Assembly (NCBI RefSeq): GCF_023055435.1
Contig: NW_025963890.1
Location: 19,158,001 to 19,222,000, forward strand
Length of the DNA: 64,000 nucleotides
DNA from: Haliotis rufescens
Lineage: Eukaryota
Direction: 5' to 3'
The notes beneath the pieces were generated by a model. It did no database searches. It had not been told where the DNA came from and worked only from the letters and a program-made list of their open reading frames with translations. Both the position numbers and the translations under genes were made by a program. This document shows, piece after piece, positions 8,768-12,829 of this stretch; position 1 is the first letter of the stretch; the number at the start of each line of letters is the position of its first letter.

Positions 8768-10472
8768 TTATTTCTTTCCTGCGGTGTTACCAAACATAAG
8801 TCCAGCACCGGCAGGCGGAGACCCAGGGAGACCTCCAGTCTGCTGTCCTGGTAGGGCGCCGCCCTGGTTAAGACCAGTCATGGGTTGTCCCATAGGCATG
8901 CCGGCGACTCCAGAGACTCCACCAAGTTGTCCCATGCCTCCCATCTGGCCCATGCCTCCCATCTGGCCCATGCCTCCCATCTGGCCCATGCCTCCCATCT
9001 GACTCTGACCGAATTGGTTGAAGGGGCTGGCGATGGGGGAGGTGGCGCTGGCGGAGTCGCGTCCAATCTTGCCGCACAGGGGGATGATATCTTGGCACAT
9101 TCCGTTTCTGATGTTCATCGACAAGCAGAGCTGAAATCATGAATAGACGATTGCTACTGGTTATTCACAATATACTAGTGTGTGGATCGCTGAAACATGT
9201 GTTAACTAGGTTCTGGATTTTGGGTTCAGTGTTTCACGGAGAAATAATAACAATAACAATAAAAACAATTATATATCTCATTAAATACAGTTTGATTGCG
9301 CGAATAAAGGTCAACACTATTAATAAGATCCTGTACAGACAGATGAGGTGGATTGCGACTTATGCTTTGCAACACAAATACACGCCGTGATATAGCTGGA
9401 ATATTGTTCAAAGCGGCGTCGGGGCGGTCGGGTAGCCTAGTGGTTAAAGCGCTCGCTCGTCAAGCCGAAGACCCGGGTTCGATTCCCGACATGGATACAA
9501 TGTGTGAAGCCCATTTCTCGTGTGAGGACATGTGCCGTGATATTGCTCGAATATTGCTAAAAGCGGCGTAAAACCATACTCACTCAAAGCGGCGTTAAAC
9601 TCACTCACTCACTCACTCATACTGACAGAATGGGTCGTAAATAAAACCTACAGCAAGACCACGTCCATTCAGTTCTTCCAGTGCCTCAAAGCCACGCACG
9701 ATTCCGCTTGAGGTATGACCTTGGTTGGGTCTGAGCACGAAAGGCGATCCAAGCACTCCAGTTCTGTAAGATGAATTGGTAAAATGCATGAAATAATCAA
9801 ATGTCACAAATCCACCATCTAATCAACACTGATAATTGAGCATGATATGTATAGAATCAACAAATATGTGATTTCGGTTAAAGGATGTAATATTTAAGGT
9901 TACTTTTACGGGATGATTCAACCGTACTTTTACATCAGAAGCTTACCCTTTTCACGAAAACCTGGTGTCATCACTGATTTTCAGTCATCTATTCATACAA
10001 TGTCCACTGTTATTTAGAATCTGTTTGACATTGAAACCATCAATGTCCTCAAGAGCAGGCTTACTCGTAAATAATAATCTGCTCCAGAATCCCCACGGCG
10101 TGCCTGCTTGACAGTAAATTGACTTGGGTTTAACGCCGCTTTGAACAGTATTTCAGTTATAGCACGGTGTTTCATTTTAATGTGGGAGGATAGCGAAAAG
10201 TGATGCAAGTCTCAGACGGGGATTCACAGGCTTCTGGCTTCTGGCACGCCTACGGGACGTAACTCTGCACAGCGATTTCCGGCATCCTAGAAGACTTGGC
10301 AAAAGCATCCGTGGTCTAGTGGTAGAGCGTCTGCCCCGAGAGCGTTCCTTAACCTGCCTATCGCCCGTCATTAAGGACTGGTTTGCTCGGAGTCAGTATC
10401 CTGTGTCTGAGTGGGGTATTTATGTTAAACTGCGGCATGGTATCTCAGTGGTATAGCACTATAAATCGGCAT

Positions 10473-10548
<76 letters not shown>

Positions 10549-12829
10549 CATGCACATCGCTATGTAAGTACAATAATCTTGAACGCGAAGTTAAACCAAA
10601 TTTCACCTCACCTTCACCTACTTCATGCCGATGAACTGGGTGATCTGTGTTTTTGTGAATTATTTCTTAGCAAACAAATGATGGGAATGGGGAAATCTAT
10701 AAGGACTTACTGGGAATTAGACTCTCTTGGCTGGAAGAAGTTCATTCCTTGGAAGTTATCCACGATTCTGCCCAGAGCTTGGCTTGAACAACCATCCTCC
10801 ACACGACCGTAGCGGGTGACCACCAACTGGAACTGTCCAGCGGTCTGAGACTGACCAGACACGCGGACCACAGCATCCATCTGAATGCGTTGTGGGTTGA
10901 ACCAACGGTTGATTTGCCATCTCTCTTGCTGATCCTGCAATGATAAATTTATGCATTAAATCACCTATATCCATATGTTAAATGAAACGAACTGTAGGGA
11001 AAACTGTATGCCGTAATTCAGTAACACTGTGCAGGGCCACGGAGCTGATCCAACCTTATCCCGGCTTTGGAGGGGTGTGGGGGTGGGGTGGGGGTGGGGG
11101 TGGGGGTGGTGGTGGTGTAGGGGGTGGGTGGGGGTGGAGGGTGGGGGGGTGGAGGAGGGTGTGTGTGTGAATGGCACGCCCAACAACAACATGTCGCACC
11201 TTAATGCCGAACGCCAAGAAGGGGAACAACCATCTTTTCACATCTTGACGTGACTCGTCAAGGGGACGGAACCACCTACATTCCGGAAATTTGTCAATCC
11301 GAACAATTACTCTATAAAATGTACTGTTCTGGTTAATGAGGTTTTACTGTATGTCTATTCCACACAATCTATCTTCCTAACATGACATGTAAATGTCATT
11401 GCCTAATGATTAGAAACCTCTGTATTTTCAACAAGAACCCCATGCGTATAGTGATTTCAACCTTTGTGTCGGCAACATGAAATATCCTACACACGTGTAT
11501 GATATACAACCGTGAAGACGTCTTAACAGATATATAGCGACAGAAAAGTTCTACCTCTCCTGTATATCCTTTATCTTACCTCAGGTTTCCTCTTACAAAA
11601 TATACCCAATTCCACCACCCCCACCCCCCGCCCACCCCCCTGGGGATTCCGGGTTTAAATATGCTGGTAGCAGTGAATCGGATGGTCAGTCTCTGTCACT
11701 TAGTTGATTGCACGTCATCGTACCCAGAGGGCATAAAACATTACTCAGGGAAATATGTTTTTTTCGCTTTTTTCATAATCTCACTGTTTTTGTCTGGTAT
11801 AGACTCGATAATTAACAGGCCACAATCATATTGCTGAGTGTGGTAAACAATAAGCACAAGCAAACATACCAGTCTTGGCTATACTATAAAAAAAATCCCC
11901 AATTCTGTAATAACAATAAATATATACATACTGCTTGAGTGAAGGTCACTCTCATCTCATCGCCATTTGTATTTTTTCCTATACACGTGAAATAGCGTTC
12001 TGGAAAGAAATATTCCATATCAGCATATTGAACATAGATGTGAAGTATATTTACGGGAATATACTTTGCAATGATTATGATTTATTTAATTCAACACAAA
12101 CATGGTTGCTTAAAAATACATTTTCTAGTGTTTGTTAGAGGCAAATCTATATCATTTTCGAATGATTCTTATCTATACACAACGAAAATCATAAAAAAGT
12201 AGAAACATTGTAAATACTGAAATAGCAACTAAGCCATGTTTAATTTACAAAATCTCTTGGAAAATTGAAAAAATGATAACCAAAATAATGTAATAGTTTC
12301 TAATAATTTCATTCCTACCAATCACCCGCGTATTTATGACAAAGGATTCTTACTTCTTTCTATGTCTACTACACACTTTTAAGATGTCATTTTGATAGAT
12401 TTGCTTCACCTCATTCGTTTACGTTTGCATATTCTCGCCGTGGTCTAATTGGCAAATTGGGAACACTGAATATGATGTAAATTGAAAACATTATGATATT
12501 AAATGCTCAATTAAGATTATAACGATAACCTTTCTAATTCTGTTTCTGTAAATGGTCAATAGCATGGTCAAAAAAATGTACTCACGGGTGTTCCGGTTGT
12601 TTCCCCAGATTCCTTGACCACTTCCTATTCCACCTCCAACTCCACCTCCAACTCCAAGTCCACCTCCAACTCCAAGTCCACCTCCAATGCCAGGTTGACC
12701 ACCGGGTTGAGGCCACCCAGGCTGTTGTCCAAAGTTACCCCAACCGTTGTTACCCCACTGGGCAGAGATCAACCTACCCATCACACCAACAAGGACGAGA
12801 ACAAGGGTACTTTTGGACGCCATGATCAT
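8768..12829 (-). CDS. Gene B: secreted Gly-rich protein with degenerate Cu/Zn-SOD-like domain and Gly/Met/Gln-rich C-terminal tail (about 336 aa)
   Basis: Exons 12829-12586, 11999-11932 (QRYFTCIGKNTNGDEMRVTFTQA), 10934-10711 (...FQLVVTRYGRVEDGCSSQALG...), 9763-9652 (TGVLGSPF...LNGRGLA) and 9130-8768 (LCLSMNIRNGMCQDIIPLCGKIG...QMGGMG repeats...TAGKK*). Total 1011 nt, open frame, hydrophobic signal peptide. Confidence 0.9.
9421..9583 (+). mobile_element. Family-1 SINE nested in the tail of an older SINE (intron 4 of gene B)
   Basis: 12-bp TSD tcaaagcggcgt at 9408-9419 and 9584-9595. Confidence 0.8.
10308..10622 (+). mobile_element. Internally deleted Meta-type SINE with expanded (CA)n
   Basis: Head and tail match 6026-6385; (CA)n at about 10476-10545. 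Confidence 0.75.
11070..11165. repeat. G-rich (GGGGTG)n tract in intron 2 of gene B
   Basis: Many G4-G7 runs directly visible. Confidence 0.85.

Follow-up and report, generated by a model that had tools for sequence, protein, structure and literature searches.

The 64-kb window analyzed here (the whole stretch from 19,158,001 to 19,222,000 of contig NW_025963890.1, our C112, in the abalone Haliotis rufescens) holds a tandem array of related genes. Six paralogs are complete, three of them minus-strand genes (B, C and D) and three plus-strand genes (E, F and G), and two more, A and H, are cut by the window edges (Table 1). Their products begin with a signal peptide and are rich in low-complexity sequence. 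Predicted models of two orthologs have the fold of copper/zinc superoxide dismutase (Cu/Zn SOD), and the exon plan of the genes is that of secreted SOD genes in the same genome, which makes a common origin with those genes likely.

All 26 complete introns in the window have GT-AG ends, and intron phases follow the order 1/0/2/0 throughout copies A to G. In every copy, exon 1 encodes the signal peptide and then a low-complexity stretch peculiar to that copy. Exon 2 encodes strands 1 and 2 of the predicted barrel, exon 3 strands 3 and 4 with a loop cysteine, exon 4 strands 5 and 6 with half of strand 7, and exon 5 the remainder, with or without a Gly/Met/Gln tail. Two RefSeq proteins labelled Haliotis rufescens, P0048 and P0049, are tiled without gaps and at 100% identity by the exons of A and D, respectively (A exons 2-3 are P0048 residues 71-163, and D exons 2-5 are P0049 residues 203-358). 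Thus, the public annotation uses the same junctions. The exons of C likewise tile protein P0006 without gaps. When the genome was searched with the family alignment, matches resembling exons 4 and 5 turned up just left of the window, where they fit A, and the exon-3-like match of H fell at C112:19221970-19222119.

Exon joints were checked against RNA for gene B, using contigs from four runs of two studies; the runs are presumed to be RNA, and the spliced form of the contigs is itself the evidence. The joints 9130/9652, 9763/10711 and 10933/11931 (the last with the cut at +1) occur in all four runs, and 11996/12586, with three bridging letters, in three of the four. The skipped lengths of 521, 947, 997 and 589 nucleotides, the last less its three bridging letters, equal the intron lengths of 521, 947, 997 and 586. 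Contig pieces cover exon 1 in the four runs (12586-12825 or 12883), and in exon 5 contigs span 8700-8960 and 8972-9130. The boundaries that the first-pass annotation had read in B from the letters alone, after VTFTQA (phase 0), in the codon before TGVLG (phase 2) and at GRGLA/LC (phase 0; a slash marks the junction), are thereby confirmed. In three of the four runs the bridging letters at the joint of exons 1 and 2 differ from the window at base 11997; with the change, exon 2 would open with a full codon for Ser instead of Arg, and it looks like a polymorphism.

Table 1. Positions of the SOD-like family members and of the parts of gene B (window coordinates unless a contig is named).
Feature	Position	Strand	Description
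Paralog A	743..3386	minus	cut at left edge; exons 1-3: 3386-3179, 2716-2652, 960-743; exons 4-5 left of window
Paralog B	8768..12829	minus	exons 12829-12586, 11999-11932, 10934-10711, 9763-9652, 9130-8768
B exon 1	12586..12829	minus	start codon, signal peptide, Gly-rich stretch; ends with one base of split codon; donor c/gtgagt
B intron 1	12000..12585	minus	586 nt, phase 1, GT..AG; at very start of SOD-like domain
B exon 2	11932..11999	minus	strands 1-2 (RYFTCIGK...EMRVTFTQA); tiles P0004 residues 64-85; strands from DSSP of model
B intron a	10935..11931	minus	997 nt, phase 0, gtatgt..ttgcag; three residues past strand-2 Phe; SOD1 intron 1 boundary
B exon 3	10711..10934	minus	strands 3-4, disulfide-loop Cys, variable loop; no intron at SOD1 intron-2 site
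B intron b	9764..10710	minus	947 nt, phase 2, ca/gtaagt..ttacag/a; in codon two residues before invariant Gly of TGVLG
B exon 4	9652..9763	minus	strands 5-6 and first half of strand 7, ends GRGLA; tiles P0004 residues 162-198
B intron c	9131..9651	minus	521 nt, phase 0, gtaggt..tttcag; GRGLA/LC; SOD1 intron 4 boundary
B exon 5	8768..9130	minus	remainder of strand 7, a last loop that is shortened, strand 8 (IIPLCGKIG), Gly/Met/Gln-rich tail, stop
Paralog C	21260..25821	minus	exons 25821-25089, 24703-24624, 23799-23657, 22592-22436, 21367-21260; phases 1/0/2/0
Paralog D	31029..35704	minus	exons ~35704-34603, 33980-33907, 33010-32874, 32022-31869, 31136-31029
Paralog E	38775..40763	plus	exons 38775-39117, 39424-39512, 39641-39783, 39928-40156, 40647-40763
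Paralog F	47518..49687	plus	near copy of E; exons 47518-47860, 48167-48255, 48384-48532, 48851-49079, 49571-49687
Paralog G	54924..56938	plus	near copy of E; exons 54924-55245, 55651-55739, 56009-56151, 56349-56577, 56822-56938
Paralog H	62600..64000	plus	cut at right edge; Gly-rich exon-1-like ~62626-62847; exon-3-like match from ~63970 (tblastn)
Intronless copies	C2:22877251-22934020		tandem cluster of ten
Intronless copy	C301:4583575-4584312		
Intronless copy	C168:1502236-1502895		
Intronless copy	C235:3610383-3611105		
Intronless copy	C334:16433312-16434043		

Relatives were collected with a profile of seven exon-3 peptides, which at E up to 0.001 matched 47 proteins in a library of 1.84 billion. 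We took 27 of them, excluding 19 hits with multiple low-complexity stretches and one 58-residue fragment. These 27 secreted proteins come from abalones, Gigantopelta, Patella, Lottia, Lymnaea, Elysia and Plakobranchus and from unnamed assemblies. Most are labelled “uncharacterized” or carry names taken from their repeats; for the abalone proteins, the RefSeq names also include “glycine-rich cell wall structural protein-like,” “collagen-like” and “PE-PGRS-like.” The family alignment comprises 26 proteins: these 27 minus P0020 (a fragment) and P0031 (aberrant tail), plus P0048. Searched against the genome, it gave 49 matches, of which 35 are exon-sized and lie on C112 between 19,154,876 and 19,279,983, so the array continues past both ends of the window. 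One partial match lies on contig C2, and 13 matches (L035-L047) have a single open frame over nearly the whole model, in the C2 cluster and on C301, C168, C235 and C334.

The fold evidence comes from database orthologs of B and D (P0004 and P0003, respectively), each modeled with a family alignment. By the predicted local distance difference test (pLDDT), the core of P0004 (residues 61-232) scores mostly above 90 and that of P0003 (190-349) mostly above 85. The models show an eight-stranded Greek-key barrel that can be superposed on SOD1. Foldseek, run with the P0004 model against PDB, returned among the rows listed only Cu/Zn SOD, domain II of CCS and the silkworm protein EA4 (probability 1.00, template modeling score about 0.7 by target, identity 12-16%). 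VIA-align placed SOD kin in all 50 rows listed per list for both models, with identities across the structural alignments of 12-21%. In ESM Atlas, Sod_Cu was assigned to 30 of 30 feature hits and to the best three structure rows, and UniRef names one Lottia member as having an SOD Cu/Zn-binding domain. The models thus support a Cu/Zn-SOD fold for the window family.

Residue register was taken from hhalign matches between exon groups of the genome's own SOD genes and the family alignment; these serve for register only, not as proof. The best local matches set SOD HGMHV-HQYGDLSNGCTSTG on family GRFQLVVTRYGRVEDGCSSEA, LGRA on NGRG, and ARLACCVIGR on IIPLCCKIGR. The columns of the loop cysteine and the strand-8 cysteine, which form the intrasubunit disulfide pair of SOD, are invariant or nearly so in the 26 proteins and fall on the SOD cysteines (GC on GC, ACC on LCC), so that the same bond is predicted here. 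In L047, an intronless copy of D/E type (C334:16433312-16434043), GTKSAD replaces GC and the SOD disulfide cysteine is lost. In copy B, positions 9044-9130 read LCGKIG where nearly all family members, including the Haliotis asinina ortholog P0004, read LCCKIG; B therefore lacks one cysteine of the six-cysteine pattern, and the transcript contigs agree with the window there.

Cu/Zn SOD binds its metals through four copper and four zinc ligands, made up of six histidines and one aspartate, one histidine bridging both metals. In the family, TGV takes the place of H[AV]GD ahead of strand 5, and LC follows the strand-7 intron at the position of VH in abalone SOD1; the strand-4 histidine block HGMHV-H of SOD genes aligns to GRFQLVV-T in the one hhalign match that reaches ligand positions. 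The other zinc-loop ligands would sit in a replaced, unalignable loop, and the check covers the positions outside it; judged from the aligned residues, all metal-ligand positions that can be checked are lost. Since the ligands are missing, dismutase activity is expected to be absent from the window proteins.

Intron positions were compared with two kinds of SOD genes in the same genome. The first is abalone SOD1, on contig C445. Its exon 1 ends YFSQG/gtatga (phase 0); exon 2 begins DADSPVKV and stops one base into the Gly codon that follows GDNTN (phase 1); exon 3 begins with the loop Cys and stops two bases into the Arg codon that follows EDEI (phase 2); exon 4 begins HAGDLGN and ends GRTIV (phase 0); and exon 5 opens with VHAG. 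The whole codons of exons 2 and 4 correspond to residues 24-55 and 80-118 of the 153-residue human chains (e.g., 1hl5_A; for exon 2 the reported aligned stretch is query 2-31 on chain 25-54), and all four introns lie at the human positions. The human boundaries quoted in the first-pass annotation (c.72, c.169, c.239 and c.357) agree with these exons and with variant names found in the accessible text of SOD1 papers (c.72+19, c.169+50, c.239+34, c.240-7 and c.358-10).

The second reference is a set of secreted, ligand-bearing SOD genes on contigs C79 and C146, which are a closer model for the window family than SOD1. In two C79 genes, the exon for strands 1 and 2 reads ccag/(x)YATCTV...DFSQMD/gtaagt (phase 1 in, phase 0 out), the next cag/FCGHY...HGMHVHQYGDLSNGCTST...DEK plus AG/gt (phase 2), the third ag/A-HVGDFGN...LGRAIV/gtgagt (phase 0), and the last cag/IHAGTDD...RLACCVIG. 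The phase-1 acceptor of these two genes (genes 1 and 2) is placed by reading frame and a polypyrimidine-AG tract, without RNA backing, three residues before the strand-1 Cys motif. Every C79 or C146 SOD exon that reaches the phase-2 junction has the end ..R/H[AV]GD in common, and no equivalent of SOD1 intron 2 occurs before the loop Cys in the C79 and C146 SOD genes examined. A strand-1 Cys (TC) and a strand-8 CC are common to the window family and the C79 genes, and SOD1 has neither; copy B, which reads CG, is the exception in the CC column. The window family shows the full C79-type plan: a signal-peptide exon joined through a phase-1 intron just ahead of strand 1, no equivalent of SOD1 intron 2, intron phases in the order 1/0/2/0, and TC plus CC.

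Among the domain introns, intron c is the most constant, lying after the second residue past GRG (GRG[LMI][AV]/) in all six complete copies, codon-exact with GRTIV/ of abalone SOD1 and GRAIV/ of the C79 genes. Intron a lies, in A and B, three residues past the strand-2 Phe or Leu (F+3), which is the SOD1 boundary YFSQG/; this register pairs model residue 63 with residue 1 of the SOD1 chain and needs no gap. In D it lies at +6, in C at +8 and in E to G at +11, that is, three to eight codons beyond A and B, within the same loop between strands 2 and 3 and still in phase 0. The C79 genes have it at F+4. The first-pass annotation had given all complete paralogs a boundary of the VTFTQA type, which is correct only for A and B.

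Intron b is in phase 2 in seven of seven copies. Counted from the loop Cys, the split codon comes 22nd in the SOD genes, where it precedes the Gly of H[AV]GD by three residues, and 25th or 26th in A and B; in B, without gaps, the intron falls one codon downstream of SOD1 intron 3, or at the identical site if the former zinc-ligand His has been deleted. In C to G the split codon is the 11th residue after the Cys and precedes the conserved Gly of GV[LV] by 16 (C), 17 (D) or 40 (E to G) residues, so the first-pass annotation's placing in the loop before GVLG/GVV covers more than one position. The loop from Cys to strand 5 measures 28-29 residues in C and D and 30 in A and B; in human SOD1 it measures 26. 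Because the loop of C and D is about as long as that of A, B and SOD1, intron b truly lies elsewhere within it. Exon 3 is open through “GC” in seven of seven copies, with no intron at the SOD1 intron-2 site; this absence, noted in the first-pass annotation, is common to the C79 and C146 SODs. The phase-1 split codon, residue 63 of P0004 in B, is paired by VIA-align with mature human SOD1 residue 1, in the P0003 model as well.

When three introns were placed at random in a 459-nucleotide domain with four reference sites, at least two exact matches arose in about 2 of 10,000 trials, and two exact matches with a third within one codon about five times per million. The first-pass annotation regarded the intron positions as independent evidence of SOD ancestry. 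They do support that ancestry, though not in full independence from the protein comparison, since an alignment of proteins or structures decides what counts as the “same position.” The intron layout is a supporting line of evidence and not a discovery by itself; the fold evidence supports SOD ancestry much more strongly.

Taken together, we think it likely that the window genes descend from a secreted (extracellular-type) Cu/Zn SOD gene whose exon plan they kept, whose metal ligands they lost and whose loop introns moved; that the source was a secreted SOD rather than SOD1 we infer from these comparisons. From its ancestor the family would have kept the eight-stranded SOD barrel, the disulfide cysteine pair and a five-exon plan in phases 1/0/2/0 (signal peptide; strands 1-2; strands 3-4 and loop; strands 5-7a; strands 7b-8). 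The checkable metal-ligand positions and most of the zinc and electrostatic loops would have been lost. The strand-7 intron would have stayed fixed to its codon in every copy, and the strand-2 and phase-2 introns would have come to lie in loops no longer constrained. In C to G, exon edges may then have shifted within the freed loops with phase kept, and the shift would have created new loop sequence, such as the WGQ repeats of E to G (in E, the repeat loop is on exon 39928-40156). Later growth would have come from tandem duplication and from the lengthening of low-complexity sequence in exon 1, in exon 5 or in the loop, and retrocopies would have founded the intronless clusters. The likely order of events is acquisition of the secretion signal and loss of intron 2, then loss of the metal site, then loop and tail expansion, tandem duplication and retrocopying.

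A direct descent from a four-intron SOD1-type gene, with the family itself losing intron 2 and gaining its signal-peptide and low-complexity exon through a new phase-1 intron, is close to what the first-pass annotation proposed. It accounts well for intron a of A and B, which is codon-exact with SOD1 intron 1 where the C79 genes are at F+4, and for the pairing of the phase-1 split codon with mature SOD1 residue 1. The metal-bearing secreted SOD genes of the same genome, however, already lack intron 2 and already appear to have a phase-1 acceptor three residues before the strand-1 Cys motif, and they share with the family the strand-1 Cys and strand-8 CC that SOD1 lacks. Two independent origins of one plan would be less parsimonious, and we regard direct descent from SOD1 as unlikely. 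Because the loss of intron 2 and the phase-1 intron also occur in secreted SOD genes, both features most likely predate the family. Hence the part of the earlier proposal that concerns an SOD1-like exon structure stands, in that the fold matches and the introns fall in the structural elements that hold SOD1 introns 1, 3 and 4 and agree with them in phase (exactly at strand 7 in six of six copies, at strand 2 in A and B only, and one codon off for the phase-2 intron of B), with a secreted SOD as the closer model. The first intron is indeed in phase 1, but it is probably no novelty of the family, since the two C79 genes appear to have it too; only the low-complexity expansion of exon 1 is the family's own.

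It is also conceivable that the strand-2-loop and phase-2 introns of C to G arose anew after loss of the originals, or that the positions in A and B are the derived ones. Intron a of C to G does lie 6-11 residues past its anchor instead of three, and intron b 11 residues past the Cys as opposed to 22-26, despite a loop in C and D of a length like that in A, B and SOD1. Against this, the order, number and phases (0 and 2) of the introns are alike in all seven copies and the same two loops are involved, and loss followed by regain in the same loop and phase, twice over, requires more events than sliding edges or flanking indels. Most simply, donor and acceptor would have slid along a loop that no longer had to bind zinc, and we hold new introns to be rather improbable. 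That a generic beta-sandwich acquired coincidental introns without any SOD ancestry is very unlikely, given the structural matches and intron coincidences above, even though no sequence method detects SOD and identity in the structural alignments is so low.

Several observations weigh against a secreted-SOD origin. At E up to 10, the SOD profile PF00080 matches none of the four domain exons of B and none of the 20 full-length family members tested, and a six-frame scan of the whole genome (1.33 Gb) with it gave 33 exon-sized matches, all on other contigs. Searches of PDB sequences by phmmer and by profile, with exon 3, the exon-3 alignment and the 26-protein alignment, gave no SOD, their sole hits being at chance level (E about 1-2). 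The exon-group matches by hhalign are collinear, yet have P values of 0.022, 0.088 and 0.019 and probabilities below 3%. The fold evidence is from predicted models of orthologs, not from the window proteins themselves, and position equivalences before strand 5 were set by aligned ranges, DSSP and motifs instead of a residue-level structural alignment. In C to G just one of three domain introns is codon-exact, and the remaining two may not be the same introns as in SOD. A signal-peptide exon was looked for in the C79 SOD genes and not found, and their phase-1 acceptor is placed by frame and tract. Thirteen intronless family copies exist in the genome, and the polarity adopted here, with introns ancestral, would follow from the match to SOD genes and not from outgroup gene structures.

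A tree of 32 proteins, midpoint-rooted with no SOD outgroup and with long branches for Lymnaea, Lottia and the ortholog of copy C, bears on this last point. It divides deeply into two clades (support 100/99 for each), in which the A and B types group with Gigantopelta and Patella, and the C to G types with Lottia and the heterobranchs. As both clades include window genes that have introns in these phases, the five-exon plan most likely predates the split of the two clades. The intronless copies are intact and full-length, with signal peptides and Gly/Met/Gln/Asn repeat tails, and occur at no fewer than three places in the tree. They are probably retrocopies, those on C2 having then been duplicated. 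The earlier statement that all complete paralogs share the three introns accordingly holds for the window, as do phases and GT-AG ends, and fails for the 13 full-length intronless copies elsewhere.

Compared with SOD1 (PF00080; the genome's own copy on C445), the family has no Pfam match, a replaced strand-4 His, a replaced zinc loop, a last loop about nine residues shorter and no intron before the loop Cys, and it adds a signal peptide, low-complexity tails and, in most members, six cysteines. The secreted molluscan SOD genes of C79 and C146 are more similar, being secreted and tandem, with the 1/0/2/0 plan (including a putative phase-1 intron, in two C79 genes), no intron 2, a strand-1 Cys and a strand-8 CC. 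Unlike the window family, they keep the HGxHVH, HxNP and HVGD motifs and are detected by Pfam, whereas the window family is free of ligands where checked, invisible to Pfam, rich in long Gly/Met/Gln/Trp repeats and shifted in its loop introns. Among oyster proteins, cavortin/Cg-EcSOD and dominin are described as lacking SOD activity in the accessible part of PMC9118643, and roles in metal handling, immunity or shell formation have been proposed for non-catalytic SOD homologs (PMC6530089, as far as its text is available). The likeness to these oyster homologs is one of description; the comparison of exon plans covers the C79 and C146 genes.

Domain II of CCS, a copper chaperone, and EA4, a clock protein of the silkworm, both rank among the top structural matches and are likewise SOD folds diverged from dismutase. 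In contrast to the window family, they are recognizable by sequence as SOD kin, have other partners or domains, lack low-complexity tails and do not form a tandem secreted family. Copper-only SOD repeat proteins (CSRP) are described as SOD-derived extracellular mollusc proteins without a zinc loop (PMC12217663, available portion), and resemble the family in these respects; their domains differ in keeping copper-type His motifs, matching Pfam and repeating within one chain and one open reading frame. An intronless multi-domain example is on contig C323 (L001/L010, C323:906399-910706, minus strand), a 643-codon open reading frame with several SOD-like domains bearing His motifs, two of which Pfam matches. 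A single-domain query from C323, tried as a source of a canonical SOD set, gave 19 proteins, mostly copper-only SOD fragments and no SOD1, and that comparison was dropped. Elsewhere in the genome, an SOD-like match at C223:10365303-10365500 (L021) covers profile positions 2-57 in one frame with two stop codons and is possibly a processed SOD pseudogene.

The window has further features beside its exon plan. Exon 1 of D (34603-35704) encodes, after the signal peptide, a long repeat of some twenty GAMGGLGGG-type units followed by SSQSGWG repeats, all in one exon. With about 1,100 nucleotides of exon 1 and about 156 domain residues, D encodes about 520 residues; P0003 (349 amino acids) and P0049 (358) are far shorter, so the repeat has been collapsed or cut in those database models. 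Introns c and b of gene B (9405-9620 and 10110-10470) contain copies of a tRNA-like short interspersed nuclear element (SINE) followed by CTCA repeats. Summed contig depth over the SINE copies is enormous in all four runs (up to about 470,000), with many chimeric joints, and points to a repeat family that is both abundant and expressed. Intron b of B also has a (CA)n run at 10478-10545, and a GGGGT-rich run lies at 11068-11169.

By analogy, the window proteins are most likely non-catalytic secreted scaffold or matrix proteins. The analogy is with the inactive oyster SOD homologs and with an SOD-domain protein listed among the major Lottia shell proteins in the accessible text of PMC4094399. 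Abundant unassigned Gly/Met-rich proteins are also reported from abalone shell and mantle proteomes in the available part of PMC6003135. A shell-matrix identity for the family was sought in the accessible portions of PMC6003135, PMC4094399 and PMC2989941, and we claim no link from them; possible leads there, equally without a claimed link, are the abundant, unassigned G/M/P-rich nacre protein CLC_12027/idb_54497 and Lottia GMP_LOTGI. The Met/Gln-rich Haliotis asinina proteins ML5A7, ML8B1 and ML6A10 were set aside, as their size, isoelectric point and composition do not fit. In the open-access literature we found no paper that names the family as SOD-derived.

Members of the family were seen in patellogastropods, vetigastropods, Gigantopelta and heterobranchs, with at least 20 copies in Haliotis rufescens, and the searches did not turn up the class under an SOD label. 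Tentatively, and with more doubt than confidence, these proteins could be a gastropod-wide class of SOD-barrel scaffolds in which a stable, secreted barrel anchors low-complexity modules that evolve rapidly, with the repeat loops made by sliding of loop edges. If so, they would plausibly be major Gly/Met-rich proteins of the shell matrix or of another extracellular matrix, and the loss of metal binding would have freed the exon edges around the former zinc loop to slide. Gene structure and predicted fold together tie a set of label-less abalone proteins firmly to Cu/Zn SOD and, more precisely, to the secreted SODs. The family is an example of intron positions serving as a fossil record for a pseudoenzyme family beyond the reach of profile detection, and it provides candidates for the abalone shell and mantle proteomes.

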